NCBI GenBank assembly: GCA_965240325.2
Contig: OZ251236.1
Span: forward strand, 1,550,001 to 1,614,000
Length of the DNA stretch: 64,000 nucleotides
From: Rebecca billardiae RCC1528
Taxonomy: Eukaryota > Protista > Haptophyta
Reading direction: 5' to 3'
Shown here in pieces: positions 388 to 32,400 of this stretch; position 1 is the stretch's first letter, and every line of letters begins with the position of its first letter. Both the position numbers and the translations under genes were made by a program. A model generated the notes under the pieces. That model was given only the letters and a program-made list of their open reading frames with translations, had not been told where the DNA came from and made no database searches.

Positions 388-425
<38 letters not shown>

Positions 426-846: not shown

Positions 847-880
<34 letters not shown>

Positions 881-13053: not shown

Positions 13054-16000
13054 ATGCGACCGCGCAAGTGGACGCTCACTCAAGCGGCGGTGCTGCTGCT
13101 CGCAGTCGCGCCGGGCACCGTGAATGCGCAGTTCGTGAGCATCGAACGTGAGCAGAAGATCTCGGCCACGTCTGGCGGGCTTGATGCGTCCTCCGTGTCG
13201 GCGGGCGACGAGCTCGGCTGGAAAGGCCTTGCCTTTGTGGGCGACTTGGACGGCGACGGCGTACCCGACGCGGTCGCCGGGCTGCACATGGCGTCGTCCG
13301 CCGATGGCGCAGCACTCGTGCTCTTCCTGCGCGCGAACGGCACCGTCCACACCGAGCAACGCCTTGCGTCCGGCCAGCGCGGTCTGCCCGTCCTCGTGTC
13401 CGCGGGCAAGTTTGGTGCCGGCGTCGCCGCGCTCGGCGACGTTAACAACGATGGCGTGCCAGACGTGGCGATCGGTGCGAGCGAGGCTGGCGGCGGGCGA
13501 GTCTACATGTGCTTCATGAACGCCGACGGCACCGTCAACGCCACCGAGCAGATCGGTCAGGGCTTGGGCGGCTTCACCGGCACGCTCGGCAGCTCGGACC
13601 TGTTCGGGCAAGCGCTGGCTAACGCGGGCGATCTCGACGGTGACGGAAATCTCGAGCTGCTCGTCGGCGCGCCCGGTGACAGCGCGATGTACGTGCTCTT
13701 CACCAACAGCACCGGCACCGTCACCTCGCACACCAAGATTGCGGCGGGCAGCGGCGGCTTGGTCGCAGCCCCCAGCGCCAATGACGTCTTCGGCGAAGCA
13801 CTGGCCGGGCTCGGCGACGTGAACGGTGACGGTGTGCCCGACGCGCTGGTGGGCGCGCCCGGCGACAAGGACGGCGGCAACCAGGCGGGCGCCGTGTACG
13901 TGCTCATGCTCGATGCCACCGGCGCGGTCATCGCCGAGCAGAAGATCACGGAAGGGCTCGTGAACCCGCCCGGTGGCTTTGACCGCTTCGGCTTTGCGGT
14001 GTCAGCACTCGGCGACCTGAATGGGGACGGCGTCGTCGACTGTGCGGTGGGCGCGGAGAGCACGGACGACGGCGTGTCGAACTCCGGCTCCGTGTACATC
14101 CTCCTCCTCACCTCCGCGGGCGCGGTGCTCGATGAGCGCAAGATCAACACCCTCAGCACAGACCTGACGGCCGAGCTGGCATCGGGCGACCATCTCGGGT
14201 CGGCACTGAGCGCGGCGGACGTGGACGCGGATGGGACGGTCGACCTGCTGGTTGGCGCGTGGGGGGACGACGACGGCGGCTCGGACGCTGGAGCGATCTA
14301 CCTGTGGCACCTCAACGCCTGGCAACCGCCGTCGCCACCGCCATCACCGCCACCACCGGCACCACCGCCGAGCCCACCGCCCGCGGCGCTGCTCCCGAGC
14401 CCGCCACCATCGCCGCCGCCATCACCGCCGCCGAGCCCGCCGCCGAGCCCACCGCCGAGCCCGCCGCCCAGCCCGCCGCCCAGCCCGCCGCCCAGCCCGC
14501 CGCCGTCGCCGCCGCCGAGCCCGCCGCCGCCCACTCCGCCACCGAGCCCACCGCCGAGCCCGCCGCCGAGCCCGCCTCCCAGCCCGCCGCCCAGCCCGCC
14601 GCCGCCAAGCCCGCCGCCGAGCCCGCCGCCGAGCCCGCCGCCGTCGCCGCCGCCAAGCCCGCCACCCTCCCCGCCGCCGTCATCACCACATCCCACGCCG
14701 CCACCAAGCCCGCCGCCAACACCACCGCCCTCCCCGCCGCCGAGCCCGCTGCCCCGGAGCCCGCCACCGAGCCCGCCGCCTGCCCCTCCGCCCAGCCCAC
14801 CGCCGAGCCCGCCACCGCCATCGCCACCACCGTCGCCGCCGCCGAGCCCGCCACCCACCCCACCGCCAAGCTCGCCGCCCTCGCCACCGCCCTCGCCGCC
14901 ACCCTCGCCGCCTCCCTCGTCGCCGCCTCCGGTGCCGCCGCCGAGCCCACCTCCAAGCCCGCCTCCGAGTCGACCGCCGAGTCCGCCACCGAGCCCGCCG
15001 CCGAGCCCGCCGCCGCCGAGCCCGCCGCCGAGCCCGCCGCCATCACCGCCACCTTCGCCGCCACCGTCACCGCCGCCGCCGAGTCCGCCGCCGAGCCCGC
15101 CGCCGAGCCCACCACCAAGACCCCCGCCAAGCCCGCCACCGCCATCGCCACCCCCGTCGCCGCCGCCGAGCCCGCCACCCTCCCCGCCGCCGAGTTCGCC
15201 GCCCAGCCCGCCGCCCACCCCGCCGCCCAGCCCACCGCCCAGCCCACCGCCCAGCCCGCCGCCACCGTCCCCTCCGCCATCGCCCCCGCCATCTCCGCCG
15301 CCGTTGCCACCGCCGTCGCCGCCGCCGCCATCACTGCCGCCGAGCCCGCCGCCGAGCCCACCGCCGAGCCCGCCGCCGAGCCCGCCGCCGCCAGGCTCTC
15401 CGCCGAGTCCGCCGCCGAGCCCACCGCCGACTCCGCCACCATCGCCACCGCCGCCGGGCCCGCCGCCGAGCCCGCCACCGTCACCGCTACCGGGCCCTCC
15501 GCCGAGCCCGCCACCGCCATCACCGCCTCCGTCGCCTCCGCCGAGCCTGCCACCGAGCCCGCCGCCGAGCCCGCCGCCATCGCCACCGCCACCCAGCCCG
15601 CCACCACGCCCGCCGCCATCGCCGCCACCAAGCCCACCACCGAGCCCAACGCCGCCGTCCCCACCGCCGTCCCCACCGCCATCGCCGCCGCCGGCGCCGC
15701 CACCCTCGCCGCCGCCGCCGTTGCCGCCGCCGAGCCCGCCGCCGAGCCCGCCGCCGAGCCCGCCGCCGAGCCCGCCGCCGCCAAGCCCACCGCCGAGCCC
15801 GCCTCCGAGCCCACCACCGAGCCCGTCGCCATCGACGCCGCCGCCGAGCCCGCCGCCGAGCCCGCCGCCGAGCCCGCCACCATCACCACCGCCATCGCCA
15901 CCACCGAGCCTGCCGCCGCCATCGCCGCCACCGTCGCCACCGCCGAGCCCGCCGCCGAGCCCGCCGCCATTGCCACCGCCGTCGCCGCCGCCGAGCCCGC

Positions 16001-19000
16001 CGCCGAGCCCGCCGCCATCGCCACCGCCGTCGCCACCGCCGAGCCCGCCGCCGAGCCCGCCGCCGAGCCCGCCGCCCCCGAGCCCGCCGCCGAGCCCGCC
16101 ACCGTCGCCACCACCATCACCGCCGCCGAGCCCGCCGCCGCCGAGCCCGCCGCCGTCGCCGCCGCCAAGCCCGCCACCCTCCCCGCCGCCGTCACCACCA
16201 CCGCCCACGCCACCACCAAGCCCGCCGCCAACACCACCGCCCTCCCCGCCGCCGAGCCCGCCGCCGCCGAGCCCGCCACCGAGCCCGCCACCTGCCCCTC
16301 CGCCCAGCCCACCGCCGAGCCCGCCGCCGCCATCGCCACCACCGTCGCCGCCGCCGAGCCCGCCGCCGAGCCCGCCGCCCCGCCCGCCGCCCAGCCCGCC
16401 GCCCAGCCCGCCGCCCAGCCCGCCGCCCAGCCCGCCGCCGCCGTCCCCTCCACCATCGCCACCGCCATCTCCGCCGCCGCCGCCGCCACCCTCGCCGCCG
16501 CCGCCATCGCTGCCGCCGAGCCCGCCGCCGAGCCCGCCGCCGAGCCCGCCGCCGAGCCCGCCGCCGCCGAGCCCTCCGCCGAGCCCGCCGCCGAGCCTAC
16601 CACCGAGCCCGCCGCCATCGCCGCCGCCGCCGAGCCCGCCGCCGAGCCCGCCACCATCACCACCGCCATCGCCACCACCGAGCCCGCCGCCGCCATCGCC
16701 GCCGCCGTCGCCACCGCCGAGCCCGCCACCGAGCCCGCCACCGAGCCCGCCGCCGCCGAGCCCGCCGCCGAGCCCGCCGCCGTCGCCACCACCATCACCG
16801 CCGCCGAGCCCGCCGCCGCCGAGCCCGCCGCCGTCGCCGCCGCCAAGCCCGCCACCCTCCCCGCCGCCGTCACCACCACCGCCTACGCCACCGCCAAGCC
16901 CGCCGCCAACACCACCGCCCTCCCCGCCGCCGAGCCCGCCGCCGCCGAGCCCGCCGCCGAGCCCGCCGCCATTGCCACCGCCGTCGCCACCGCCGAGCCC
17001 GCCGCCGAGCCCGCCGCCATTGCCACCGCCGTCGCCGCCGCCGAGCCCGCCGCCGAGCCCGCCGCCATCGCCACCGCCGTCGCCACCGCCGAGCCCGCCG
17101 CCGAGCCCGCCGCCGAGCCCGCCGCCCCCGAGCCCGCCGCCGAGCCCGCCACCGTCGCCACCACCATCACCGCCGCCGAGCCCGCCGCCGCCGAGCCCGC
17201 CGCCGTCGCCGCCGCCAAGCCCGCCACCCTCCCCGCCGCCGTCACCACCACCGCCCACGTCACCACCAAGCCCGCCGCCAACACCACCGCCCTCCCCGCC
17301 GCCGAGCCCGCCGCCGCCGAGCCCGCCACCGAGCCCGCCACCTGCCCCTCCGCCCAGCCCACCGCCGAGCCCGCCGCCGCCATCGCCACCACCGTCGCCG
17401 CCGCCGAGCCCGCCGCCGAGCCCGCCGCCCCGCCCGCCGCCCAGCCCGCCGCCCAGCCCGCCGCCCAGCCCGCCGCCCAGCCCGCCGCCGCCGTCCCCTC
17501 CACCATCGCCACCGCCATCTTCGCCGCCGTCGCCGCCACCTTCGTCGCCGCCGCCATCGCTGCCGCCGAGCCCGCCGCCGAGCCCGCCGCCCAGCCCGCC
17601 GCCCAGCCCGCCGCCGCTGAGCCCTCCGCCCATCCCGCCACCGTCGCCACCACCATCACCGCCGCCGAGCCCGCCGCCGCCGAGCCCGCCGCCGTCGCCG
17701 CCGCCAAGCCCGCCACCCTCCCCGCCGCCGTCACCACCACCGCCCACGCCACCACCAAGCCCGCCGCCAACACCACCGCCCTCCCCGCCGCCGAGCCCGC
17801 CGCCGCCGAGCCCGCCGCCGAGCCCGCCGCCTGCCCCTCCGCCCAGCCCACCGCCGAGCCCGCCACCGCCATCGCCACCACCGTCGCCGCCGCCGAGCCC
17901 GCCGCCGAGCCCGCCGCCGAGCCCGCCGCCCAGCCCGCCGCCCAGCCCGCCGCCCAGCCCGCCGCCCAGCCCGCCGCCCAGCCCGCCGCCCAGCCCACCG
18001 CCCAGCCCGCCGCCATCGCCGCCGCCGCCGAGCCCGCCGCCGAGCCCGCCACCGTCACCGCCTCCGAGCCCTCCGCCGAGTCCGCCACCGCCATCACCAC
18101 CTCCGTCGCCACCCCCGAGCCCGCCACCGAGCCCTCCGCCGAGCCCTCCGCCACCAAGCCCGCCTCCGAGCCCGCCACCGACACCGCCGCCATCGCCGCC
18201 GCCAAGTCCGCCGCCGCCGAGTCCGCCACCGTCGCCACCGCCGAGCCCGCCGCCGAGCCCGCCGCCCAGCCCGCCGCCGCCGAGCCCGCCGCCGAGCCCG
18301 CCGCCGACACCACCGCCATCGCCACCGCCATCGCCTCCGCCACCGAGCCCACCGCCAAGCCCGCCGCCATCGCCGCCACCGAGCCCGCCGCCCAGCCCGC
18401 CGCCGCCGTCTCCACCGCCATCGCCCCCGCCATCTCCTCCGCCGTCGCCGCCGCCGTCGCCGCCGCCGCCGAGCTCGCCGCCGAGCCCGCCGCCGAGCCC
18501 GCCGCCGAGCCCTCCGCCGAGCCCGCCACCGCCATCACCGCCTCCGTCGCCTCCGCCGAGCCCGCCACCGAGCCCTCCGCCGAGCCCGCCGCCCCCAAGC
18601 CCGCCTCCGAGCCCGCCGCCGACACCACCGCCTTCGCCACCGCCATCGCCGCCGCCGCCGAGCCCCCCGCCGAGTCCCCCGCCGAGCCCGCCTCCGGCGC
18701 CGCCGCCCAGCCCGCCGCCGCCAAGCCCGCCGCCATCGCCACCGCCGTCGCCGCCGCCGTCGCCACCGCCGTCGCCGCCACCGCCAAGCCCGCCACCGAG
18801 CCCGCCGCCAGCCCCGCCCCCGAGTCCGCCGCCGCCGAGCCCGCCACCGAGCCCGCCACCATCGCCGCCGCCGAGCCCTCCGCCGAGCCCGCCGCCGCCC
18901 AGCCCGCCGCCATCGCCGCCGCCCAGCCCGCCACCCAACCCGCCGCCATCGCCGCCGCCCAGCCCGCCGCCCAGTCCGCCGCCGGCACCGCCACCGAGCC

Positions 19001-22000
19001 CGCCACCGCCGTCTCCGCCGCCAAGCCCGCCGCCCAGCCCACCGCCATCGCCGCCGCCGAGCCCACCACCGCCGAGCCCGCCGCCATCGCCGCCTCCCTC
19101 GCCACCGCCGGTGCCGCCGCCCAGCCCGCCGCCGCCATCGCCGCCGCCCTCGCCGCCGCCCATCTCTCCACCCTCGCCACCGCCAAGCCCGCCACCGCCC
19201 TCGCCGCCGCCGAGCCCGCCGCCCGCCAGTCCGCCGGCGCCACCACCAAGTCCACCGCCGCCCAGCCCACCACCAACGCCACCGCCGAGCCCGCCACCGT
19301 CGCCGCCGCCGTCGCCGCCGCCACCCGGCGCGCCGCCCTCGCCGCCGCCGAGCCCGCCGCCCCTGCACCCGCCCGCGCCGCCGCCGAGCCCACCACCATC
19401 GCCTCCGCCCTCGCCGCCGCCTCAGCCCCCGCCTCCGCTTCCCCCGCCGAGCCCGCCACCGAGCCCGCCGCCGAATCCACCGCCGTCGCCGCCGCCGCCA
19501 AGCCCGCCGCCCGCCCCGCCGCCCGCCCCGCCCCCGCAGCCACCGCCGTCGCCGCCGCCGCCGGGCTTGCCACCAAGCCCGCCGCCGAGCCCGCCACCCG
19601 CGCCGCCGCCGCGCCCGCCGCCGCCCAGCCCGCCGCCCAACCCGCCGCCGTCGCCGCCGCCGAGCCCGCCGCCCAACCCTCCACCTCCAAGCCCACCGCC
19701 AAGCCCACCCCCTTCGCCGCCGCCGACGCCGCCGCCTCCCGGGCCACCGCCGTCGCCGCCGCCCGCTCCACCGCCACAGGCGCCACCGCCGCCGCCACCG
19801 ACGCCGCCGCCGAGCCCGCCGCCCTCGCCGCCGCCCTCGCCGCCGCCGCTCCCACCACCGCCCAGCCCGCCGCGCCCGCCGCCGTTCGTGCCGCCGCCGC
19901 TGCCGCCAAGCGCGTCCCCGCCGCCGAGCGCGCCGCCGCCGTCCGCGCCGCCGTCGCCCCCTCCGCTCTCCCCGCCGCCCTCTCCGCCCGGCAGCTCGTC
20001 CTACCTCGGCCTCACGCTCGACGCCGAGCCGAGCGCGTACGGCACACAGGCGGCGCAGCGGGCGCTGGCCGACGGCCTCGCGAGCGCGGCGGCCATCCCG
20101 GCCGAGTGGGTGGGCGTGGTCTCCGTGTCGGCCGCGTCGGTGCGCGTGGTGCTGCGCGTCTTCCAGCCGAGCGACCCGGCCGCCCCCGACGCGGCCGCCG
20201 CGCTGCAGGCGCTCTCAGCGGAGGGCCTGGGCGCCTCGCTCGGCGTGGGCGTGCTCGTGACGCCCGAGCCGCTCGTCGCGGGCTGCTCCGAGCCGGGCGC
20301 GGCCAACTACGAGCCCGGAGTCGAAGTGGACGACGGCAGCTGCGTGGCTCACTCGCCGCCGCCGCCGGCGTCGCCGCCGAGCGCGCCGCCGAGCCCGCCG
20401 CCCGCGTCGCCGCCGCCGAGCCCGCCGCCGAGCCCGCCGCCGAGCCCGCCGCCGCCGAGCCCACCGCCCCTTCTGCCACCGCCGCCGCGCGTGGCTCCGT
20501 TCCCACCGCCGAGCCCGCCGAGCCCGCCGCCCGCGCCGCCGCCCAGCCCGCCGCCGAGCCCGCCGCCGGGCGCGCCGCCCGCACCGCCGCCGAGCGCGCC
20601 GCCGAGCGCGCCACCGAGCGAGCCACCGAGCGCGCCGCCGCCGGCGCCACCGCCGTCCTCGCCGCCGCAGCCGCCGCCGCGCCCGCCGCCGCGCCCGCCG
20701 CCGCCGAGCCCGCCGCCGGCCCTGCCGCCGCCGCCTCGCGCTGAGCCGTTCCCGCCGCCTGCGCCGCCAAGCCCGCCGCCGCGCCCGCCTCCGCCGCGCC
20801 CGCCGCCGAGCCCGCCACCGAGCCCGCCGCCCTTGCCGCCGCCGCCACCACCCGGCACGCCCCCGGCGTCGCCGCCCTCGCCACCGCCGCCGCCGCCGCC
20901 GCACGCGCCGCCTCTGCTGCCGCCCTCGCCGCCGCCCTCGCCACCGCCGATGCCGCCGCTGCCGTCGCTGCCACCCTCGCCGCCGCCTCGCCCGCCGCCG
21001 CCGAGTGCGCCGCCCTCGCCGCCGCCGCCGCCGCGCACCGAGCCGTTCCCGCCGCCGGCGCCGCCGAGCCCGCCGCCGAGCCCGCCGCCGAGCCCGCCCC
21101 CGCCGAGCCCACCACCCAGCCCGCCACCATCCCCACCGCCAAGCCCGCCCTCGCCGCCTCCGCTGCCTCCGCCGCGTGATCCGCCGAGCGCGCCGCCGAG
21201 CGCGCCGCCCACGCCGCCGCCCTCGCCGTCGCCGCGCCCGCCGCCTGGCGCGCCGCCGAGCTCGCCGCCGATGCCGCCGCCGAATCTGCCGCCGCACGCG
21301 CCGCCGCCGCACCCGCCGCCCAGTCCGCCGCCTGGCACACCGCCGCCGATGCCTCCGCCCTCGCCGCCGCCTACGCCGCCGCCGCCGAGCCCGCCACCGT
21401 CTCTGCCGCCGCCGCCGCGCACGGAGCCGTTCCCGCCGCCGGCGCCGCCGAGTCCGCCGCCGAATCCGCCGCCGAGCCCGCCACCGCAGAGTCCGCCGCC
21501 GAGCCCCTCTCCGCCTTCGTCCCCCAGCCCGCCCTCGCCGCCTCCGCCGCCTCCGCCGACCACGCCGCCGAGCGAGCCGCCGACCACGCCGCCAGCACCG
21601 CCGCCCACGCCACCGCCACCGCCGCCGCCGCCCGCGCCGCCGCCGCGCCCGCCGCCGGTGCCGCCGACACCGCCGCCGCCGCCGCGCACGGAGCCCTTCC
21701 CGCCGCCGGCGCCGCCGAGCCCGCCGCCAAGCCCACCTCCGTCACCACCGCCCAGCTCGCCACCGCCGCCGCCGCCATCGCCGCCGCCATCGCCGCCGCC
21801 GGGCCCGCCGCCGCACCCGCCGCCGAGCTCTCCGCCGCCGCTGCCGCCACCCAGCCCGCCGCCGCCGCCGCCGCCCGCGATCCGCGTGAGCGTGCTCGGC
21901 GGCAGCCGCGAGGGCGCGCCGCTCGGCTCGGACGACGCGGCGCTCGAGCTCGAGGGTGCGGGCTTTGACAGCCTGGCCGGCGGCGCGTTTGGCGAGATCC

Positions 22001-25000: not shown

Positions 25001-28000
25001 TCGCGACGGGCGCGGCCGAGACCGCCACGCAGCTCGTGAGCGCCCTCGCCGACGCGCTTGACGCGACGCCCGCGGGCGGCGACAACGCCACCGTCGCCTC
25101 GGCCACGCTCGCTCGGCTGCTCGAGCTCACGGCGGGCGCGGCGGAGGCGTCCGCGCCGACCGCCGAAGCACGCGCGGCGAGCGCGTCCGCGCTCGCCGCC
25201 GTGCTCGAGGCCGCGCCGCCCGGCGCGTTCGACGCCTCCGCGCAGACCGCGGGCCTCGAGCAGGTCGCCGCCCTCGCGTCGCAGTCGGCCGCGTCGGGCG
25301 TCGACGGACCGACCGCGGCCGCGCTGCTGCGCGCGGCGGACGCGGCGCTCTCCGCCGACACCGACGCCGACGCGCCGCTGAGCGCGGCGGAGGCGGAGGC
25401 CGTGGGCGGAGCGGCGACGAGCGCGGTGGGCGCGCTCGCCATCGCGCTGCTCGCCGGCGCCGTGTCGGGCGAGGCGCCCTTCGAGGCCGTGGGCAAGGCC
25501 ATCAATGTGAGCGCGACGCGCGCGGACGCGGGCGCGCTCGGCAACATCACGCTGCCCGGGCCGGGCGGCGCGGGTTCGGTGGGCGTGCCGGCGAGCGTGT
25601 TCGGCGGCGTGCCGCTCGAGCTGCTCGAGGGCGGCGTCGACGTCGTGCTCTGGTCCTCGGCGCGCAACGTGCACGGCGACCCGTCGACGCAGGCGAATGG
25701 CACGGCCGTGGCGTCGGGGCTGGTGACGCCCGTCTTCTCCGTCACGCTCTACTCGGCGTCGGCCGGGCTGGCGCTCACCATCTCCGACCTGCCGGACGAC
25801 GGGCGCGTGCTGATCGAGGTGCCCGGGCTCGACGGCGCGGGCGGCGCGGGCGAGTGGGGCTGCGTGTGGTGGGACGAGGGCGCGAGCGCGTGGCTCGATG
25901 ACGGCTGCGAGACGGTGGTCGCGCGTGCGGACGACGGCTCGCTCGCGCGCTACTGCGCGTGCACGCACCTGACCGACTTTGCGGGCGTGGCCGTGCCGAC
26001 GGACGCGGACGCGGCGCGCACCGAGGTGGTCGAGTTCAACATCAACACGCTCTCCCTTGATGACGCCGCTGCAGCCGTCGGCGTCGGCTCCGGCCCCGTC
26101 CTCGCGCGCAACCCGTACATCTTCTGGCTGGTGGTGGCGATGAGTGCCGGCTGCGGACTCAGCGTGGCGCTGTTCGGGGCGCGCGACTTGCGCGACCACG
26201 CGCGGCGCAAGGAGCGCATCCGGCGGCTGCTCGCGAGCGAGGCCGGGCCCGCCGGTGGGCTGCCGGCCTCGCCGGCCAAGCCGGCCAAGCCCTCTCTCTT
26301 CCAGCGCCGCGCGGCCAAGCTCCAGGCGGAGGAGGACGCCCTGTTTGGCGGCTCACCGTGGCGGCCCGCGCCCGCCGACGCGCCCGCCGCCGTCGGCACG
26401 CACAGCCGGCCCGCCTCCTCCTCCGTCCCGGGGCCGCGCTTGGTCGCGCCGGCGGACGGCTGGGACGCGGGCGGGCGCGCGGTGCGCGCGTCGGCCCCTC
26501 TCGCCTCCATCTCGCCCGAGGGCAGCTTCGCACAGCGGCAGCCGCCCCAGCTCTCGCCGCGGCGCGGCAGCGACGGCGCCGCTAGCCGCGGCGGCGCGGA
26601 GGCGCTCGGCTTTGCCGACAGGCTCGAGGCGCGGCTCGACGACCTCGACGACCTGGTGGACGAGACGAAGCGGCGCGCGGCGCTCACGATGCAGAAGTAC
26701 GCGCGCGGGCGCAAGGCGCGCGCCCTTGTCGACGAGGCCTCGCCCCAGTTCCGCGAGCGCAAGGCGCGCGCCTCGGACCGCACGCGCGACCACTCGCTGA
26801 CCAAGCTCGTGCGGCTCGTGGGCGAGAGGCTGAGCACAGACCACTCGCTGCTCGGCATCTGGTTCGCCGACCCGGAGGACGCGAAGCGCGCCGAGCTGGC
26901 GCAGATCTTCTGGAACATCGCGATGCTCGGCCTCGTGATCACGTGCATGCTCTACGACGCGAGCGGCGGGCCTCCGGACGCGTCGGCGGCGCCGAGCGTC
27001 TCGCTGCTGAGCGCGGTGCTCACGGCGCTTCTCACCGCGGCCCTCTCGTTCCCCGCGCTCGCGCTCTTCCGGCTGCTCTTCCGCTGGGGGTACGGCCGGC
27101 GCTCGGCGCCGCTCTCGAAGCGCGTGTTCGCCACGTTCCTCCGCGCCGAGCTCGCGCAGCGCGAACGCGAGCGCGCGCCCTTCTCCACCGCCGTCAAGAC
27201 GAGCGTGCGCACCGGCGCGTACCTGCGGCCCGCGCTGCCGCGCAAGAACTCAGACCGGCGCGGCGACGGCGGCGCGCTGCGCGCCGCCGCGCCCGCCGAC
27301 CTCGAGCTCGCGCGCGAGTTCGCGCGGCGCGCGTCGATCGAGGCGGAGCGCTCCTCCATGCCGAGCATGCCCGGGCTCGCGCCGGTCACGCTGCCCGGCA
27401 TGCCCGGCCGCTCGTCGCCGCGCGCCAAGCCGCGGCCGCCGCCGCCGCCGGGCATGACGGTGCGCCGGCCGGGCGGGCCCCGCGCCACCGGCCAGCTGCC
27501 GCCGAGCATGGCAGCGTCGATGGCGGCGACGGCGGCGGTGGCGGCGGCGGCGGGCGCTTCGGAGGGCGAGCGCACCGACGCGCCCGCCGCGGCCACGGCC
27601 GCCAAGCCGGGCAGCCTCTTCGCGCCGCGGGCGGTGGCCGTGCCGAGTGCCGACGCGTTCAAGCAGGCGCGAGTCACGCCCGTGCCCACCGCGGGCGCGC
27701 TCGACCCCGGCTCGTTCGGCCGGCACAGGAAGTCGGACGAGGACGAGTTCGAGGCGAGCGGCAGCTTCAACCAAGCGTCGTCCGAGCGCGCCGCCCGGCG
27801 CGCGGTCGCCGCGTCGCTCAGCGTCTCGCTCCGGGGCACGAGCGCGCACGCGGAGGCGGAGCGCGCGGCCGCGGCCGAGCCGCCGTCCGCGCTCGGCCTC
27901 GTGCGCGACTTTGCCGACGTGGCGTCGAACCGTCACGGCCGCTCGCCGCACCCCGGCTCGCCGCCGCTGAGGCGCGATGACGCGCCGCTCACGCCCAGCG

Positions 28001-28914
28001 GCCTCGCGGGTCAGCGCCGCCCGCACTCGCGCCCCTCCTCGGCATCGTGCGCCGCCATCTCCGCCGCGTCCACCCCGCGTGCGAGCGCAGCAGACGGCGA
28101 GGAGGCGGGTGCGACCGAGGAGGCGGAGGCGGCGATGCGCACGAGCATTAGCGAGGTGCTGCCCACGCCCCCGCCCAGCCCGCCGCCGCCGGGCGGTCCG
28201 GCGTTCTCGTTCAAGACGGGGCAGGTCCCCGCGCCTACCGACCTGCCGCCCGCCGCCGGTCCCGCCGCCGCTGCTGCGGAGGAGGAGGCGGAGGGCGGCG
28301 GTCTGGACGAGCAGACGGTCGCGCTGCTCAAGCTCAAGTTCGAGGCGTTCGACGCGGACGACAACGGCTCGGTGGACGGCACCGAGTTCGGCGCGCTGCT
28401 CGAGTCGCTCGGCTTCCGGCTGCGCCCGCGCCGCGTCAAGCAGCTCGCCTCGGAGCTGGACACCAACGGCAACGGGCTGATCGGCTTCGACGAGCTGTGC
28501 GACTGGTACGAGAAGATGGTCGCGGACGAGGCCGCAAAGGAGGCGCGCCGCGCGGCGGGCTGGCAAGGCCGCGTGCGCCGCGTGCTGCGCAGGCTGACGC
28601 CGCCGCCACTCGTCAAGCTCTTGCTCGCGTGGCTGGCGATGTGGGCCATCTTCGTCGCGCTCGCGCTGCTCGCGGTCGCGTACGCGCTCACGTTTGGCGC
28701 GCAGCAGACGCGCTGGCTCCTCTTCAGCTGGACGTTCGCCGAGGTGCAGACGCTCGGGCTGGAGGAGCCGGTCATCATCGCGATCACCGTGCTCGCGCCC
28801 ATCCTCTTCGACCGGCTGCTCTCGCAGGGCGGCGCGACGGGCGAGGCGATCAACGAGCTGCTCGCGACGACCGTCGCGACGGCCGTCACCGCGATGCACA
28901 ACCTCTGCGGCTGA
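13054..28914 (+). CDS. Giant polycystin-1-like surface receptor, copy 1 (head type A; 5286 aa): SP, 6x FG-GAP, extensin-like shaft, SEA-like, Pro shaft 2, 3x IPT/TIG, REJ, GAIN/GPS, 5 TM, IQ, 2x EF-hand
   Basis: Uninterrupted ORF 12862..28914. ATG 13054 gives a signal peptide (MRPRKWTLTQAAVLLLAVAPGTVNAQ). Motifs: six GDxxxDGxxDxxxGA repeats; REJ-type NRPPYGGGLEVAPASGVALQTSF..W..D.DLPLSYAF; GPS CVWWD..W..GC..CACTHLTDF; two canonical EF loops. Confidence 0.88.
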   Translation: MRPRKWTLTQAAVLLLAVAPGTVNAQFVSIEREQKISATSGGLDASSVSAGDELGWKGLAFVGDLDGDGVPDAVAGLHMASSADGAALVLFLRANGTVHTEQRLASGQRGLPVLVSAGKFGAGVAALGDVNNDGVPDVAIGASEAGGGRVYMCFMNADGTVNATEQIGQGLGGFTGTLGSSDLFGQALANAGDLDGDGNLELLVGAPGDSAMYVLFTNSTGTVTSHTKIAAGSGGLVAAPSANDVFGEALAGLGDVNGDGVPDALVGAPGDKDGGNQAGAVYVLMLDATGAVIAEQKITEGLVNPPGGFDRFGFAVSALGDLNGDGVVDCAVGAESTDDGVSNSGSVYILLLTSAGAVLDERKINTLSTDLTAELASGDHLGSALSAADVDADGTVDLLVGAWGDDDGGSDAGAIYLWHLNAWQPPSPPPSPPPPAPPPSPPPAALLPSPPPSPPPSPPPSPPPSPPPSPPPSPPPSPPPSPPPSPPPSPPPPTPPPSPPPSPPPSPPPSPPPSPPPPSPPPSPPPSPPPSPPPSPPPSPPPSSPHPTPPPSPPPTPPPSPPPSPLPRSPPPSPPPAPPPSPPPSPPPPSPPPSPPPSPPPTPPPSSPPSPPPSPPPSPPPSSPPPVPPPSPPPSPPPSRPPSPPPSPPPSPPPPSPPPSPPPSPPPSPPPSPPPPSPPPSPPPSPPPRPPPSPPPPSPPPSPPPSPPPSPPPSSPPSPPPTPPPSPPPSPPPSPPPPSPPPSPPPSPPPLPPPSPPPPSLPPSPPPSPPPSPPPSPPPPGSPPSPPPSPPPTPPPSPPPPGPPPSPPPSPLPGPPPSPPPPSPPPSPPPSLPPSPPPSPPPSPPPPSPPPRPPPSPPPSPPPSPTPPSPPPSPPPSPPPAPPPSPPPPLPPPSPPPSPPPSPPPSPPPPSPPPSPPPSPPPSPSPSTPPPSPPPSPPPSPPPSPPPSPPPSLPPPSPPPSPPPSPPPSPPPLPPPSPPPSPPPSPPPSPPPSPPPSPPPSPPPSPPPPSPPPSPPPSPPPSPPPSPPPPSPPPSPPPSPPPSPPPSPPPPTPPPSPPPTPPPSPPPSPPPPSPPPSPPPAPPPSPPPSPPPPSPPPSPPPSPPPSPPPRPPPSPPPSPPPSPPPSPPPPSPPPSPPPSPPPPPPPSPPPPSLPPSPPPSPPPSPPPSPPPPSPPPSPPPSLPPSPPPSPPPPSPPPSPPPSPPPSPPPSPPPPSPPPSPPPSPPPSPPPSPPPPSPPPSPPPSPPPSPPPSPPPPSPPPSPPPSPPPSPPPSPPPPTPPPSPPPTPPPSPPPSPPPPSPPPSPPPLPPPSPPPSPPPSPPPLPPPSPPPSPPPSPPPSPPPSPPPSPPPSPPPSPPPPSPPPSPPPSPPPSPPPSPPPPSPPPSPPPSPPPSPPPSPPPPTSPPSPPPTPPPSPPPSPPPPSPPPSPPPAPPPSPPPSPPPPSPPPSPPPSPPPSPPPRPPPSPPPSPPPSPPPSPPPPSPPPSPPPSSPPSPPPSSPPPSLPPSPPPSPPPSPPPSPPPLSPPPIPPPSPPPSPPPSPPPPSPPPSPPPSPPPSPPPSPPPPTPPPSPPPTPPPSPPPSPPPPSPPPSPPPAPPPSPPPSPPPPSPPPSPPPSPPPSPPPSPPPSPPPSPPPSPPPSPPPSPPPSPPPSPPPSPPPPSPPPSPPPSPPPSPPPSPPPPSPPPSPPPSPPPSPPPSPPPPSPPPSPPPTPPPSPPPSPPPPSPPPSPPPSPPPSPPPSPPPPSPPPSPPPTPPPSPPPSPPPPSPPPSPPPSPPPSPPPSPPPPSPPPSPPPSPPPSPPPSPPPPSSPPSPPPSPPPSPPPSPPPPSPPPSPPPSPPPSPPPSPPPPSPPPSPPPTPPPSPPPSPPPPSPPPSPPPSPPPAPPPSPPPPSPPPSPPPSPPPSPPPSPPPPSPPPSPPPAPPPSPPPPSPPPSPPPSPPPSPPPSPPPPSPPPSPPPSPPPNPPPSPPPSPPPSPPPAPPPSPPPPSPPPSPPPSPPPSPPPSPPPPSPPPSPPPSPPPVPPPSPPPPSPPPSPPPISPPSPPPSPPPPSPPPSPPPASPPAPPPSPPPPSPPPTPPPSPPPSPPPSPPPPGAPPSPPPSPPPLHPPAPPPSPPPSPPPSPPPQPPPPLPPPSPPPSPPPNPPPSPPPPSPPPAPPPAPPPQPPPSPPPPGLPPSPPPSPPPAPPPRPPPPSPPPNPPPSPPPSPPPNPPPPSPPPSPPPSPPPTPPPPGPPPSPPPAPPPQAPPPPPPTPPPSPPPSPPPSPPPLPPPPSPPRPPPFVPPPLPPSASPPPSAPPPSAPPSPPPLSPPPSPPGSSSYLGLTLDAEPSAYGTQAAQRALADGLASAAAIPAEWVGVVSVSAASVRVVLRVFQPSDPAAPDAAAALQALSAEGLGASLGVGVLVTPEPLVAGCSEPGAANYEPGVEVDDGSCVAHSPPPPASPPSAPPSPPPASPPPSPPPSPPPSPPPPSPPPLLPPPPRVAPFPPPSPPSPPPAPPPSPPPSPPPGAPPAPPPSAPPSAPPSEPPSAPPPAPPPSSPPQPPPRPPPRPPPPSPPPALPPPPRAEPFPPPAPPSPPPRPPPPRPPPSPPPSPPPLPPPPPPGTPPASPPSPPPPPPPHAPPLLPPSPPPSPPPMPPLPSLPPSPPPRPPPPSAPPSPPPPPRTEPFPPPAPPSPPPSPPPSPPPPSPPPSPPPSPPPSPPSPPPLPPPRDPPSAPPSAPPTPPPSPSPRPPPGAPPSSPPMPPPNLPPHAPPPHPPPSPPPGTPPPMPPPSPPPTPPPPSPPPSLPPPPRTEPFPPPAPPSPPPNPPPSPPPQSPPPSPSPPSSPSPPSPPPPPPPTTPPSEPPTTPPAPPPTPPPPPPPPAPPPRPPPVPPTPPPPPRTEPFPPPAPPSPPPSPPPSPPPSSPPPPPPSPPPSPPPGPPPHPPPSSPPPLPPPSPPPPPPPAIRVSVLGGSREGAPLGSDDAALELEGAGFDSLAGGAFGEIQCAFTRADGGGDGGGPLLSGATVLSDARLRCAMPAAASSGAPSAAGAYTVGLALGAVGASTDVDVSGLFGPVSFELYDMAAVSVLELRPPGGPVGGGTAVTLVGSGFAEYGEGQLCCVLGGGGCAAAATLLPPSAAAPTLSRARCVLPPPLGGAAGSVALELSLGGGSADSTTASALPFFAYDPPTLGSVSPASGDANGGTEVTIGGAGFDALAGGALLAVRFGDAPAQPPARVTAGEVVVSTRYGAAGRAQLRVSLNGQQFTPAAAATPPPAGALAFTFVGLHAPVLEGVAFNGAATLMVLRFDAQPTDRAGMGSGVGECSRVLDDDTVALVGGGAAAAAAAPPQCYWTDDSTLVARLSSATLVRAGSEVGVRAGALRPEQCGTPCAAALASAAVRAAIDADAPCGEGVPCPTPVAAVSGPAVLSACPGASLALDGSASSRGGIGPAAFEWRVDPSRSARAASLNARLSALPARTPQLSLGGPGAASPTELGVSGSFVFVLRVTSFLGVPSAPAEWPVSRGDGASPILAIDGAPELRARASEPTLLSGRAELAPCWPPSFEPAMVFSWALEGAAQVGGGANASSSASAGELAAATDVLLARLASARTAVLQLPPHSLAAGWAYDLALTARMAAAPAQASTARVRVRVARQPLRAVIAGGDRRVPSSLRLAVDASASFDPDAPTADGGDGGMPPLSFAWSVANASSLEPVALEPSAANASGALFELAPGTLPPGVYALTVRVSAPGRAPAAASVTVEAVPGAVPTLGFEPLGRRKWPAVFDRNPERLTINARLDAASRALEAAGQARFSYEWSARRVGAAGALEPAGLDLADSERVTTTGAALRTVAIRSGALAPGATYAFRLAVLGGAQPAYTEVRVTINRPPYGGGLEVAPASGVALQTSFALYAAGWAEDDEEDLPLSYAFSHAPLGTDAVAAVAALGAASASASAAALLPAGNRTLTVRVADALGGAAHAHTAVAVAPPGEGAGLLDSVLTRAYAAVATGAAETATQLVSALADALDATPAGGDNATVASATLARLLELTAGAAEASAPTAEARAASASALAAVLEAAPPGAFDASAQTAGLEQVAALASQSAASGVDGPTAAALLRAADAALSADTDADAPLSAAEAEAVGGAATSAVGALAIALLAGAVSGEAPFEAVGKAINVSATRADAGALGNITLPGPGGAGSVGVPASVFGGVPLELLEGGVDVVLWSSARNVHGDPSTQANGTAVASGLVTPVFSVTLYSASAGLALTISDLPDDGRVLIEVPGLDGAGGAGEWGCVWWDEGASAWLDDGCETVVARADDGSLARYCACTHLTDFAGVAVPTDADAARTEVVEFNINTLSLDDAAAAVGVGSGPVLARNPYIFWLVVAMSAGCGLSVALFGARDLRDHARRKERIRRLLASEAGPAGGLPASPAKPAKPSLFQRRAAKLQAEEDALFGGSPWRPAPADAPAAVGTHSRPASSSVPGPRLVAPADGWDAGGRAVRASAPLASISPEGSFAQRQPPQLSPRRGSDGAASRGGAEALGFADRLEARLDDLDDLVDETKRRAALTMQKYARGRKARALVDEASPQFRERKARASDRTRDHSLTKLVRLVGERLSTDHSLLGIWFADPEDAKRAELAQIFWNIAMLGLVITCMLYDASGGPPDASAAPSVSLLSAVLTALLTAALSFPALALFRLLFRWGYGRRSAPLSKRVFATFLRAELAQRERERAPFSTAVKTSVRTGAYLRPALPRKNSDRRGDGGALRAAAPADLELAREFARRASIEAERSSMPSMPGLAPVTLPGMPGRSSPRAKPRPPPPPGMTVRRPGGPRATGQLPPSMAASMAATAAVAAAAGASEGERTDAPAAATAAKPGSLFAPRAVAVPSADAFKQARVTPVPTAGALDPGSFGRHRKSDEDEFEASGSFNQASSERAARRAVAASLSVSLRGTSAHAEAERAAAAEPPSALGLVRDFADVASNRHGRSPHPGSPPLRRDDAPLTPSGLAGQRRPHSRPSSASCAAISAASTPRASAADGEEAGATEEAEAAMRTSISEVLPTPPPSPPPPGGPAFSFKTGQVPAPTDLPPAAGPAAAAAEEEAEGGGLDEQTVALLKLKFEAFDADDNGSVDGTEFGALLESLGFRLRPRRVKQLASELDTNGNGLIGFDELCDWYEKMVADEAAKEARRAAGWQGRVRRVLRRLTPPPLVKLLLAWLAMWAIFVALALLAVAYALTFGAQQTRWLLFSWTFAEVQTLGLEEPVIIAITVLAPILFDRLLSQGGATGEAINELLATTVATAVTAMHNLCG
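13140..14310 (+). other. FG-GAP beta-propeller head A (6 repeats)
   Basis: GDLDGDGVPD, GDVNNDGVPD, GDLDGDGNLE, GDVNGDGVPD, GDLNGDGVVD and ADVDADGTVD, each preceded by (F/L)G and mostly followed by GA(P). Confidence 0.9.
14326..19989 (+). repeat. Coding minisatellite, extensin-like (SPPP)n/SPPPP shaft of copy 1 (~1888 codons)
   Basis: 12-nt units (e.g. agcccgccgccg) mixed with 15-nt units; internal duplication with 1050-bp offset (15961 vs 17011; 16290 vs 17340). Confidence 0.95.
20353..21876 (+). repeat. Second, more degenerate Pro-rich segment (508 codons); equivalents at 38017-39540 and 55462-56985
   Basis: Poly-Pro with S/A/T/R/L; recurring R(T/A)EPFPPPAPP motif; same length in all three copies. 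Confidence 0.9.
21877..25989 (+). other. 3x IPT/TIG, REJ and GAIN/GPS ectodomain of copy 1 (offset +17664 in copy 2, +35109 in copy 3)
   Basis: IPT signatures LRPPGGPVGGGTAVTLVGSGF and SVSPASGDANGGTEVTIGGAGF...VSLNGQQF; REJ Ig-like repeats (LDGSAS, VDASASFDPD, LSFAW); GPS at 25858-25989. Confidence 0.8.
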
Positions 28915-28925
28915 GCTTGGATAAA

Positions 28926-28964
28926 CCCAACGGGATTCTCATACCGGCCCAACGGGATTCTCAT
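28926..28964. repeat. 17-bp direct repeat CCCAACGGGATTCTCAT x2 just downstream of the stop codon (also at 46587-46625)
   Basis: 28926-28942 and 28948-28964 are identical, with a 5-bp spacer. Confidence 0.9.
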
Positions 28965-29424
28965 GGCCTTTGGGCGCCTTATTTTTGGTAGTAACGACAT
29001 GGGTATGGTTTTGATAATTTGTGTAGTGTATAATTCTGTTGATTGGCGCAGCTCCATAACTCCATAAGTAATTCGACAAGGTCGGCTATTAATTCCTCGA
29101 TCAATCAAGGGATGACTATGATAACGTCGTCCTCGACTCCTCGCCGACGACGAGTCGCCGTCGTCGTCGTCGTCGCCTGGTGTACCATACCCTCGTGGAC
29201 CCGCATATCTATCATCCTTGAGTGTATTTCTGGAATACCCCTCACGAACGCTCCAAGTACAGTTTTACTAAGAATAAGAGACGCACACACCTCAGGCAGG
29301 CGAGTACGACGCGCTGGTCATGCTCCTCCAACAACACCTTGGTGCTCGGGCCGCGGCGCGCATTGGGCGCGCCTTGCCGGGCGTGTCGGGTGCCGACGCG
29401 CTCGCACGTCGCCTCCGCCGCCGC

Positions 29425-32400
29425 ATGCGTGTGCCACAACCAGTCCTGCTCGCCGCCGTGCTGCTCGCCGCGCTGCCTGCCACGCGAGCGCAGACGAGCC
29501 CGCCGCCCTCTCCGCCACCCAGCCCGCCGCCGTCGCCAACTGCGGTCGTGCTCGGCCAGACGAAGATCTCGGCCACGCAGGGCGGGCTGGCTCAGGCGCT
29601 GCAGGATCGCGACGAATTTGGCACCGCCGTCGCCAGCCTGGGCGACGTCGACGGCGACGGCGTGCCCGACGCGTTTGTCGGCGCGCCGTGGGATGCGATC
29701 AACGCCAACATCGGCGGCGCGGGGTACGTGCTGCTGATGAACGCAGAGGGCACGGTGAAGGCGGAGACGCGCATCGCCGAGCAGGAGGGCGGCTTCACCG
29801 AGTCTTTCTCCGGCCAGGCGCACTTCATCGGCGGCTCGGCCGCCGGCCTGGGCGACCTGGACGGCGACGGCGTGCCGGACATGCTGATGGCGCAGGGCGA
29901 CAAGGCCGGCTCGACGATCTGGACGCTCTTCCTCAACACGGACGGCACGGTCAAGTCGTACGTCAAGATCGCGCCCGGCGAGGGCGACCTCGCAGACCTC
30001 GGCACTGACAAGTTTGGCAACACAGTCGCGGTGCTCGGCGACGTCGACGGCGACGGCGTCGTCGATGCCCTCGTGGGCGCGGGCCGGCGCGACACGCAGT
30101 CGGCCTTCGTCCTCTTCCTGCGCACCGACGGCAGCGCGAAGGGGTACCAGGAGATCTCCGAGGCGGCGGGCGGGCTGGCCGCCTCGCCGTTCGTCAACGG
30201 CACCTGGGGCAACGCCGTGTGCGCGGCCGGTGACGTGAATGGCGACGGCATACCAGACGCGGCCGTGGGCGACGAAAAGTACGAGGACGGCGGACTCAAG
30301 TACGGCGCGCTGTACGTGCTGATGCTCCACCGGAACGGCACGGTGAAGGCGGAGGCGTTCATCAGCAAGGACGAGCTGAGCCTTCTGGCGGCCGGGCACA
30401 AGCTCGGCTCGGCTTGCGAAGGGCTGGGCGACCTCGACGGTGACGGTGTGCCAGACCTGGCGGTGGGCGCGAAAGAGGCTGGCTCCGGCGAGCAGGGCGG
30501 GGTGTTCATTCTGAACCTCAACTCGGACGGCAGCGTGAAGGCGTCGGCTGAGATCAGCCAGGGCGTGGGCGGGCTCAGCGCGAGCGGGCTCGACGAACTC
30601 GACCAGTTTGGCAGCGGCCTCGGCTTCCTGGGCGACCTCGACGGCGACGGCTCCCCAGAGCTGATGGTCGGGGCGCCGTGGGACGATGATGGCTTCAACA
30701 AAGCGGGTGCGGTGTACGTGCTCACGCTCGCCACGCCGCCCTCGTCGCCGAAACCGCCGCCCAGCCCGCCGCCGAGCTCGCCGCCGCCGAGCCCGCCGCC
30801 GAGCCCGCCGCCGAGCCCGCCACCACCATCGCCGCCCCCGAGCCCGCCGCCCAGCCCGCCGCCGCCAAAGGCGCCGCCGAGCCCGCCGCCATCGCCACCA
30901 CCAACGCCACCGCCGAGCCCGCCGCCGAGCCCGCCGCCGAGCCCGTCGCCGCCGAAACCGCCGCCGAGCCCGCCGCCGTCGCCACCACCATCGCCGCCGC
31001 CGAGCCCGCCGCCGAGTCCGCCGCCGTCGCCACCACCATTGCCGCCGCCGAGCCCGCCGCCCAGCCCGCCGCCGCCGAAGCCGCCGCCGAGCCCGCCGCC
31101 ATCGCCACCACCATCGCCACCGCCGAGCCCGCCGCCGAGCCCGCCGCCGAGCCCGTCGCCGCCGAAACCGCCGCCGAGCCCGCCGCCGTCGCCACCACCA
31201 ACGCCGCCGCCAAGCCCGCCGCCGAGCCCGCCGCCGAACCCGTCGCCGCCGAGCCCACCGCCGAGCCCGCCGCCGTCGCCACCACCATCGCCACCGCCAA
31301 GCCCGCCGCCGAGCCCACCTCCGAGCCCGCCGCCGCCGAGCCCGCCGCCATCGCCACCGCCGTCGCCACCGCCGAGCCCGCCGCCGAGCCCGCCGCCATC
31401 GCCACCGCCATCGCCACCGCCGAGCCCGCCGCCGAGCCCGCCGCCGAGCCCGCTGCCCCCGAGCCCGCCGCCGAGCCCGCCACCGTCGCCACCACCATCA
31501 CCGCCGCCGAGCCCGCCGCCGCCGAGCCCGCCGCCGTCGCCGCCGCCAAGCCCGCCACCCTCCCCGCCGCCGTCACCACCACCGCCCACGCCGCCACCAA
31601 GCCCGCCGCCGACACCACCGCCCTCCCCGCCGCCGAGCCCGCCACCGCCGAGCCCGCCACCGAGCCCGCCGCCTGCCCCTCCGCCCAGCCCGCCGCCGAG
31701 CCCGCCACCGCCATCGCCACCACCGTCGCCGCCGCCGAGCCCGCCACCCAGCCCGCCGCCAAGCCCGCCGCCAAGCCCGCCGCCCAGCCCGCCGCCCAGC
31801 CCGCCGCCCAGCCCGCCGCCGCCGTCCCCTCCACCATCGCCACCGCCATCTCCGCCGCCGTCGCCGCCACCCTCGCCGCCGCCGCCATCGCTGCCGCCGA
31901 GCCCGCCGCCGAGCCCGCCGCCGAGCCCGCCGCCGAGCCCGCCGCCGCCGAGCCCTCCGCCGAGCCCGCCGCCGAGCCCACCACCGAGCCCGCCGCCATC
32001 GCCGCCGCCGCCGAGCCCGCCGCCGAGCCCGCCACCATCACCACCGCCGTCGCCGCCACCGAGCCCGCCGCCGCCATCGCCGCCGCCGTCGCCACCGCCG
32101 AGCCCGCCACCGAGCCCGCCGCCATCGCCACCGCCATCGCCACCGCCGAGCCCGCCGCCGAGCCCGCCGCCATCGCCACCGCCGTCGCCACCGCCGAGCC
32201 CGCCGCCGAGCCCGCCGCCATCGCCACCGCCGTCGCCGCCGCCGAGCCCGCCGCCGAGCCCGCCGCCGAGCCCGCCGCCCCCGAGCCCGCCGCCGAGCCC
32301 GCCACCGTCGCCGCCACCATCACCGCCGCCGAGCCCGCCGCCGCCGAGCCCGCCGCCGTCGCCGCCGCCAAGCCCGCCACCAAGCCCGCCGCCGTCACCA

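Follow-up and report, generated by a model that had tools for sequence, protein, structure and literature searches.

Receptors of the polycystin-1 family, including sea-urchin REJ and PKDREJ, and brown-algal REJ-GPS proteins such as Ectocarpus Esi0130_0068 (PMC4700764) carry a REJ domain followed by a GPS-containing GAIN domain right before the first transmembrane (TM) segment. The same order is found in three giant predicted surface receptors of the haptophyte Rebecca billardiae RCC1528, encoded within a stretch of 64,000 nucleotides (contig OZ251236.1, positions 1,550,001 to 1,614,000 of the forward strand; the whole stretch is referred to here as the window). Three huge open reading frames (ORFs), g1, g2 and g3, lie there in tandem on the plus strand, each gene measuring ~17.5 kb. 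As in the polycystin-1/REJ family, the ectodomain of g1–g3 is large and modular and is linked to Ca2+ signalling, in g1–g3 through cytoplasmic EF-hands. By comparison, members of that family have 11 or 6 TM segments, whereas five are predicted in g1–g3, with no Pfam match to a PLAT or PKD_channel (polycystin channel) domain at E ≤ 0.01. The FG-GAP propeller on a rod of ~2,000 residues rich in the Ser-Pro-Pro-Pro (SPPP) motif, present in g1–g3, is lacking in the polycystin-1/REJ family.

The adhesion G-protein-coupled receptors (GPCRs) BAI, latrophilin, CELSR and GPR126 provide the best structural match to the GAIN domain of g1–g3. The HL/T autoproteolysis motif (the slash marks the junction) is kept, and both follow the same plan, in which a membrane stub carries a long adhesive N-terminal fragment, but g1–g3 are without the secretin-like seven-TM region of these receptors (no Pfam 7tm match in the g1–g3 protein). 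Integrin alpha chains share with g1–g3 the tandem FG-GAP repeats with DxDxDG loops. An integrin alpha subunit proper also has thigh and calf domains, a single TM segment and a beta-subunit partner. By comparison, no Pfam match to the integrin leg domains was obtained for g1–g3, in which the SPPP shaft directly follows the propeller and five TM segments are predicted. Hydroxyproline-rich glycoproteins (HRGPs) with head and shaft, such as the extensins and the Chlamydomonas sexual agglutinins, combine a globular head with Ser-Pro3-4 repeats that are expected to form an extended, glycosylated polyproline-II rod; they occur in green plants and algae as glycoproteins of the wall or the flagellar surface and have no membrane-signalling body. 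The shafts of g1–g3 consist of long Ser-Pro3-4 repeat runs of this HRGP/extensin-like kind. The ectodomain architecture as a whole (propeller, SPPP rod, REJ-GAIN, EF-hands) was not found elsewhere in our sequence searches and is new within their reach.

As a locus, g1–g3 resemble ribosomal DNA, satellites and partially converted paralogs, in which the synonymous and intergenic sites of inner copies are likewise nearly identical, genealogies disagree along the unit, and divergence increases towards the edge. Unlike in these arrays, the unit boundary of g1–g3 lies inside a coding low-complexity repeat, so that the unconverted part is a complete, functional-looking ligand-binding domain. We regard the array as an exemplary case of concerted evolution that is partial and ends within a coding repeat. 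On balance, our analysis favours the view that it was probably shaped by unequal crossover or gene conversion among the tandem copies, with an edge effect at g1 and the boundary of exchange in the shaft.

Array layout and exchange among the copies

The array comprises the following features, the tandem units having been delimited by diagonal identity scans and spacer alignment.

12862–28914, plus strand: g1 ORF, likely start at 13054
13054–13131, plus strand: g1 start codon and signal-peptide-like N-terminus (MRPRKW...VNA/Q), recognized from the translation and a hydrophobic segment; cleavage site read by eye
13132–14325, plus strand: head A, an FG-GAP beta-propeller with six DxDxDG Ca-loop motifs (Pfam FG-GAP E = 4e-31)
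14326–19998, plus strand: g1 shaft, 1,891 codons of (SPPP)n with a 12-bp unit, mostly CCG/CCA/AGC/TCG
18226–18541, plus strand: 5′ limit of the colinearity of g1 with g2/g3 and left end of tandem unit 1 (offset 17538, then 17664)
18226–35763, plus strand: tandem unit 1, comprising the g1 3′ shaft, body, spacer, head B and g2 5′ shaft
28915–29424, plus strand: spacer g1/g2, its first 277 nt identical to spacer g2/g3
29320–46575, plus strand: g2 ORF, likely start at 29425
29425–30735, plus strand: head B of g2, comprising a signal peptide, a short SPPP stretch and an FG-GAP propeller
30736–37662, plus strand: g2 shaft, 2,309 codons, with an 822-bp higher-order repeat
35764–53208, plus strand: tandem unit 2
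37663–46575, plus strand: g2 body, from the post-shaft module to the stop codon
46576–47118, plus strand: spacer g2/g3, the same sequence as spacer g1/g2 save indels
46972 to past 64000, plus strand: g3 ORF, open from 46972, with head B from 47119; the window ends ~23 nt short of the expected stop
47119–48429, plus strand: head B of g3, with 5 differences from the g2 head (3 nonsynonymous, 2 synonymous)
48430–64000, plus strand: g3 shaft (2,226 codons; 249 bp shorter than the g2 shaft) and body, open to the window end
53209 to beyond 64000, plus strand: tandem unit 3

A preliminary description of this DNA had reported two very different heads with different signal peptides, at 13054–14325 and 29425–30735, on nearly identical tails, and both coordinates and content hold. 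Start codon and signal peptide are separate for every head, and the signal-peptide-like N-termini differ (MRPRKWTLTQAAVLLLAVAPGTVNA in head A and MRVPQPVLLAAVLLAALPATRA in head B, each with Q as the next residue after the presumed cleavage site). The propellers span ~400 residues (Pfam FG-GAP E about 5e-31 for each head, with 5–6 stretches per head) and show six DxDxDG-type loops, A and B alike; their sequence matches in the PDB are the propellers of integrins alpha4, alpha5, alphaIIb and alphaV. In register, heads A and B share 41% identity, which is no better than the 35–42% obtained from out-of-register blade alignments, so that their common residues are mostly repeat consensus, as had been proposed. 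The score of head A is 197 bits against head B and up to 274 bits against bacterial or metagenomic propellers, many of which rank above head B. Between the two heads, the synonymous divergence (dS) is 0.86, with an apparent ratio of nonsynonymous to synonymous divergence (dN/dS) of ~0.7. In a maximum-likelihood tree, they lie together on one side of a branch (support 96/83) opposite 45 other propellers, each on a branch of ~1.35 substitutions per site. From these sequence comparisons, heads A and B look like old paralogs. By comparison, the heads of g2 and g3 differ at 5 positions in 1311 nt (99.6% identical).

The copies were compared by diagonal identity scans and k-mer chaining, which revealed that the similarity of g1 to g2/g3 decays stepwise toward its 5′ end. 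The head of g1 is ~50% identical to the g2/g3 head at the nucleotide level, the first 1.6 kb of its shaft are 76–95% identical to g2/g3, and its mid-shaft is 95–99% identical to g2/g3 units, out of register. Copies g1 and g2 are colinear from ~18226 and near-identical from ~18541, a position inside the shaft ~1.5 kb before its 3′ end. Between 18,541 and 19,596 they differ by 10 substitutions (~1% divergent), and between 19,597 and 29,191 by 5 substitutions and one 3-bp indel (0.05% divergent, 99.95% identical). The last count also holds for the stretch between the start of the post-shaft module and the end of the stop codon (19999–28914 against 37663–46575), which bears out the near-identical tails of the preliminary description. 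Its placement of the identity boundary in the proline-rich shaft is likewise supported. Given that the shafts upstream of 18226 share higher-order units at 95–99% identity out of register, this boundary is a gradient and not one clean break.

Besides these out-of-register units, two features lie beyond the preliminary description, namely a third copy, g3, which carries head B, and the extension of the identity through the spacer into the next head. On the 17,664/17,661-nt diagonal, the near-identity of g1 and g2 ends at 29,191, 277 nt beyond the stop codon, and the two spacers differ by a 15-bp and an 18-bp indel at ~29192–29260. Since the identity passes the stop codon, the 0.5-kb spacer and the next head B, the repeat amounts to a tandem unit of 17.5 kb whose boundaries lie within the shaft. 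The 5′ flank of g1 is unrelated to the spacers, which identifies g1 as the left-edge copy. No relic of a further copy was found upstream of g1 within the window, where nothing resembles the spacer; head A and the proximal shaft are the unique left flank of the array. As a separate observation, the AT-richer 3′ flank common to g1 and g2 contains a 17-nt direct repeat, CCCAACGGGATTCTCAT, in two copies 5 nt apart just 3′ of the stop codon (28926–28964, and 46587–46625).

The tails are near-identical at synonymous sites as well, with dS of 0.0016 between g1 and g2 and of 0.0065–0.0073 between the g1 or g2 tail and that of g3. Within the tails, a 2.9-kb tract (19597–22536 = 37261–40200 = 54706–57645), which spans the shaft end, the post-shaft module and the second Pro-rich spacer, contains no variable site among the three copies. 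Its flanks are ~0.6% apart between g2 and g3, and at the g2–g3 background rate the probability of zero differences is ~2e-8. This points to a very recent three-way homogenization or to an unusual constraint. The tract specific to g1 and g2 starts somewhere inside 19597–22536.

Site patterns were read from a three-way alignment of g1, g2 and g3 over 18,500–28,891. Downstream of 19597, g1 groups with g2 at 38 of 39 informative sites, the remaining one grouping g2 with g3; upstream, 7 of 8 sites group g2 with g3 and one groups g1 with g2 (Fisher p = 1e-6 for the switch). The genealogies are discordant, being ((g2,g3),g1) for the heads and ((g1,g2),g3) for the tails. The preliminary description had suggested that head swapping should leave incongruent head and tail trees, and that the identity between copies should be scanned in windows; the trees are indeed incongruent, and the scan rises in steps from ~50% in the head to 99.95% in the body. 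Recombination has thus occurred, and more than once. The rate in the g1–g2 tails predicts 0.7 differences between the g2 and g3 heads, in which 5 are observed (p = 7e-4); these heads are sevenfold more diverged than the g1/g2 bodies (0.38% versus 0.05%). One unequal crossover between an A-headed and a B-headed gene would create g2 and account for the identical spacers. As the whole history, however, it was rejected because it predicts equal divergence of the g2/g3 heads and the g1/g2 tails, and it also leaves the invariant tract of ~3 kb unexplained. The mismatch between head and body divergence, together with the invariant tract, requires at least two layers of homogenization.

The shafts themselves bear signs of exchange. 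The g1 shaft contains a near-perfect internal duplication of 540 bp (15931–16470 = 16981–17520), the 822-bp higher-order repeat is found in both the g2 and g3 shafts, and the length difference between the latter two is a 249-bp in-frame indel. These in-frame length changes and internal duplications indicate that the shafts are recombinationally active. Long ORFs of up to 2,400 codons also lie antisense or in alternate frames over the shafts (14298–19163, minus strand; 14259–20744, plus strand; 29592–36827, minus strand; and others). They were rejected as genes, being by-products of a stop-free, GC-rich repeat of CCG-type triplets.

The GC (guanine plus cytosine) content at third codon positions (GC3) is highest in the homogenized body (0.96 in 21880–28911) and lowest in the heads (0.85–0.90 in 13054–14325 and 29425–30735), with 0.90–0.94 in the neighbouring genes and in paralogs of Diacronema lutheri. 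The contrast between body and heads would fit GC-biased conversion but is only suggestive of it.

Explanations of the variable head and constant body

The locus shows the marks of concerted evolution, namely near-identity at synonymous and non-coding sites and genealogies that are discordant along the unit. The window contains the left end of an array of at least three giant receptor genes. We infer that unequal crossover and/or gene conversion between misaligned neighbours repeatedly overwrites the distal shaft, the body, the spacer and the next head. By unequal crossover between misaligned units, any part could be replaced except the 5′ part of the leftmost copy, which would drift; the head and proximal shaft of g1 would therefore lie outside the reach of unequal exchange. 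As the heads are too divergent to pair, exchange would start only in the shaft, the first usable homology, and the 12-bp periodicity of the shaft offers many registers, so that exchange boundaries would pile up there. The outcome would be an ancient, divergent head A on a body 99.5–99.95% identical to its neighbours, whereas the inner copies g2 and g3 would be homogenized, heads included. Because the 5′ part of the edge copy is not replaceable by unequal crossover, a passive edge effect explains a variable head on a constant body without selected swapping. This is the simplest account that reproduces the graded decay of g1, the homogenization of the inner copies, the identical spacers and the discordant genealogies. 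In addition, the homogenization is local, as judged from the body sequences of the nearest other family members, which are only 38–45% identical.

Several points weigh against this account. The right end of the array lies beyond the window, so that the edge effect is visible at the left side only. Many histories, with the events in different orders and directions, are compatible with three copies. The 9.6-kb tract is long for simple conversion, and both the copy number and the junction of head A rest on the assembly. Furthermore, long-branch attraction could account for heads A and B being sisters in the tree, whose outgroups included no other haptophyte heads.

It is unlikely, though conceivable, that a one-off ectopic swap brought head A and the proximal shaft from another shaft-bearing gene and joined them through (SPPP)n onto the first body, with no ongoing edge effect. 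The fairly sharp switch to colinearity at 18226–18541 agrees with such a swap, as does the first 1.6 kb of the g1 shaft, its most distinct part, and the shafts of three further loci (L001 of D. lutheri, L003 and L004) are possible partners. Against it, the mid-shaft units of g1 with their 95–99% identity to g2/g3 units elsewhere indicate repeated and not single exchange, the tree unites heads A and B, and no second head-A-like sequence was found in the window or in protein and metagenome searches.

An assembly artefact, by which head A was misjoined to the array through the low-complexity shaft or the number of 17.5-kb units is wrong, appears improbable. Assembly is difficult for 17.5-kb units at 99.5–99.95% identity and for 5.7–6.9-kb runs of a 12-bp repeat, the g1 body is only 5 sites away from the g2 body, as a phantom copy would be, and the one published Pavlovales long-read assembly was built from noisy PacBio continuous long reads with Canu and Illumina polishing (PMC8379373). 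However, 7 private variants of g1 within 18504–19596 stand beside an adjoining 9.6-kb tract with a single one, a distribution that argues for nested exchange tracts and not for even consensus noise. In addition, variants and a 3-bp deletion private to g2 occur, the frame stays open across more than 5,200 codons in each of g1, g2 and g3, and the 5.7-kb shaft of g1 is within an ordinary long-read span.

The preliminary description had proposed that the shaft is a recombination hinge in a cassette-like scheme, by which alternative recognition heads are placed on one homogenized signalling body and the receptors are diversified. The part that stands is the location of the exchange boundaries, which lie in or next to the shaft; a scheme of this kind, with swapping under selection, did not gain support, and we regard it as a doubtful explanation with little chance of being right. 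Besides the boundaries, the disagreement of head and tail trees speaks for it, as does the variation of the N-terminal elaboration over the family. The closest precedent for a hinge is found in the fungal Als/Flo/Iff-Hyr adhesins, which carry a binding head on a repetitive glycosylated stalk; according to passages of PMC8712946 that cite Verstrepen 2005 (PMC1462868), recombination between stalk repeats alters stalk length and can move a head onto the stalk and tail of another gene. Unlike g1–g3, these adhesins are wall-anchored through glycosylphosphatidylinositol, have no signalling body, contain Ser/Thr-rich repeats of 30–45 residues and belong to an unrelated lineage. The observations against cassette-like diversification are more numerous. 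The three genes carry just two types of head, and in the recent event an existing head, B, was copied and no novelty created. Searches of the masked window by tblastn with both heads returned only the 3 full-length heads, with no silent or partial relics, whereas programmed cassette and antigenic-variation systems feed many variants from a silent donor reservoir into one expression site. No further FG-GAP+SPPP head, and no close head relative, was found in ~5.8 billion proteins or in Joint Genome Institute (JGI) metagenome contigs; the preliminary description had suggested a search for more of them. Moreover, bodies outside the array are not constant (38–45% identity), and the edge effect predicts the same pattern in the absence of selection.

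A plain recent whole-gene duplication followed by very fast head divergence under diversifying selection, with no recombination, can be set aside despite the apparent head dN/dS of ~0.7 and the fast evolution of which recognition domains of REJ-type receptors are capable (PMC4700764), since it is refuted by the dS contrast within single genes, saturated in the heads (0.86) and only 0.002–0.007 in the tails; between g1 and g2, neither the signal peptides nor the 5′ flanks are related, and the discordant genealogies require exchange.

Body of the predicted receptors

Downstream of the shaft, the g1 protein is divided as follows.

19999–20358, plus strand: post-shaft module of ~120 residues, plus a Cys loop (C..A.NY....DDGSC), kept after the shaft in relatives
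20359–21879, plus strand: second Pro-rich spacer of ~500 residues with five PPR.EPFPPP.PPSPPP landmarks (translation, Tandem Repeats Finder)
21880–23817, plus strand: IPT/TIG region and linker, best Pfam match at 22552–22788 (TIG E = 5.5e-14)
23818–24954, plus strand: REJ domain (Pfam PF02010, E = 2.2e-43, 149 bits against a cutoff of 25)
24958–25983, plus strand: GAIN domain ending in the GPS motif CxCTHL/TDFAG (Pfam GPS E = 5e-6, 27.3 bits against a cutoff of 22.5)
26119–28809, plus strand: membrane and cytoplasmic part (Kyte-Doolittle scan, Pfam)
26119–26175, 26896–26952, 27013–27069, 28621–28677 and 28753–28809, plus strand: five hydrophobic segments (Kyte-Doolittle scan)
28327–28509, plus strand: EF-hand pair in the long loop between segments 3 and 4 (Pfam EF-hand_7 E = 2e-10)

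The post-shaft module had been called SEA-like. Its AlphaFold2 model has a beta-alpha-beta-beta-alpha-beta topology that fits this label (mean predicted local distance difference test score, pLDDT, 63), but neither Pfam, with no SEA match even at E ≤ 10, nor Foldseek, with no significant match (best E-value 0.1, assorted ferredoxin-like folds), supports it. The sequence [AG]-S-[VI]-x-V at the beta2–beta3 turn resembles what we take to be the SEA cleavage motif. By jackhmmer, the module is matched in L001, L003 and L004; a metagenome scan with the module alone gave no match. It is followed at 20290–20350 by a Cys-bounded motif, C-x4-A-x-N-[YF]-x-P-x5-D-x-S-C, related matches to which occur ~10 times in tandem in a homolog of unrelated length (P0067, 729–1037). 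From its sequence, this motif looks like an independent small disulfide module without a Pfam name.

The assignment of the GAIN domain is supported by both sequence and predicted structure. The CxCTHLTDFAG motif, with its HL/T junction at 25971/25972, is nearly invariant across 12 homologs, and the first TM segment starts ~48 residues after the junction. In an AlphaFold2 model of 450 residues through the first membrane segment (pLDDT 74), a seven-helix subdomain precedes a beta-sandwich. The best PDB match of this model by Foldseek is BAI3 (4dlo, E = 9e-9), followed by ADGRB2, CELSR1, latrophilin and GPR126, the first four of these GAIN domains spanning E = 9e-9 to 5e-7.

If g1–g3 behave like polycystin-1, sea-urchin REJ and the adhesion GPCRs, HL/T would be the site at which the GAIN domain is cleaved, and the long N-terminal fragment would be held non-covalently. 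The propeller with its six DxDxDG loops would bind its ligand in a Ca2+-dependent manner. Polyproline-II helices rise by 0.31 nm per residue, and the shaft, if it adopts this geometry in the manner of Ser-Pro3-4 glycoproteins, would be an extended rod of ~0.6–0.7 µm. Binding to the head, or pulling on it, would pass to the membrane stub and be read out through Ca2+ and the EF-hands. In this regard, g1–g3 may act as long-reach adhesion or mechano-sensing receptors.

Relatives, neighbouring genes and significance

A search of 1.84 billion representative proteins with the body (TIG-REJ-GPS) recovered 2,246 relatives at E ≤ 1e-3, none above 45% identity. The closest are Pavlovales proteins (38–45% identity), the best ten including KAG8459354.1 and KAG8462819.1 of D. 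lutheri and KAJ1635852.1 of Pavlovales sp. CCMP2436. An FG-GAP head is present in none of the best 150 of the 2,246 relatives, and a search among long proteins with the body gave two matches only, both at the level of TIG. In KAG8462819.1, the signal peptide leads straight into TIG. At the locus of KAG8459354.1 (D. lutheri JAGTXO010000041.1, L001:4144–21816), a continuous ORF of 5,890 codons encodes a signal peptide followed immediately, without a head domain in between, by an SPPP shaft of ~1,950 residues; the annotated protein (3,751 aa) is the 3′ part of this ORF and begins after the shaft, so that the gene model appears, from the sequence, to have dropped the repeat. L003 and L004 are, like L001, family members with shafts. 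Two Logan contigs run into Pro-rich shafts at their ends. The N-terminal elaboration thus varies from neither head nor shaft (P0007) through the shaft alone (L001) to head and shaft (g1–g3).

Giant proteins that combine FG-GAP with REJ, with or without GPS, were also found (P0314, P0333, P0341, P0371 and P0352); they contain many propeller repeats and no long Pro shaft. Searches with the heads in two length ranges returned only generic propellers, mostly bacterial or metagenomic, at 29–52% identity. A metagenome scan with head A gave 80 loci at ≤47% identity, none of them with an SPPP run.

The GC content of the window is 64–86% in 2-kb windows; the D. lutheri genome has 73% GC, and 45% of its genes are single-exon (PMC8379373). 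Upstream of the array lie three unrelated, ordinary genes.

3–6338: UBR1/PRT6-like E3 ligase
8445–10862, minus strand: PhoD phosphatase
10687–11661: PEMT-like methyltransferase

In the C-terminal part of the UBR1/PRT6-like ORF, an Arg/Pro-rich stretch (5700–6250) that separates the PRT6_C match from a well-formed last segment looks out of frame or intronic; the ORF may contain a short intron. The N-terminal signal region of the PhoD-like gene contains a 42-nt direct duplication with one mismatch (10734–10817, minus strand), which doubles the peptide LQVLHTIAAASVAS.

Among the candidate receptors for gamete recognition in brown algae are REJ-GPS proteins (PMC4700764), which makes a role of g1–g3 in cell–cell recognition plausible. 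If they have such a role, heads A and B would, by analogy, bind different ligands, and the different 5′ flanks of g1 and g2/g3 possibly place the genes under different regulation. An extended rod would hold the ligand-binding head ~0.6 µm from the membrane and couple a pulling force to the GAIN domain, in a lineage whose cell-surface biology and sexual recognition are almost unknown. Very tentatively, the array could be one snapshot of a wider process, in which pavlovophyte (SPPP)n shafts serve as shared recombination substrates through which REJ-GAIN receptors, in the way of the stalks of fungal adhesins, gain, lose or exchange their tips, yielding a repertoire of fibrils of about half a micrometre with different propellers at the tip for cell–cell or gamete recognition or for mechanosensing; we would give this broader picture a low probability.

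Gene callers drop the shafts, as in D. lutheri, where the signal peptide and ~1,950 shaft residues are missing from the annotated protein, and the family is therefore under-described in current proteomes. The locus also shows that a recognition head and its signalling body can evolve apart from each other when a repeat stalk lies between them.

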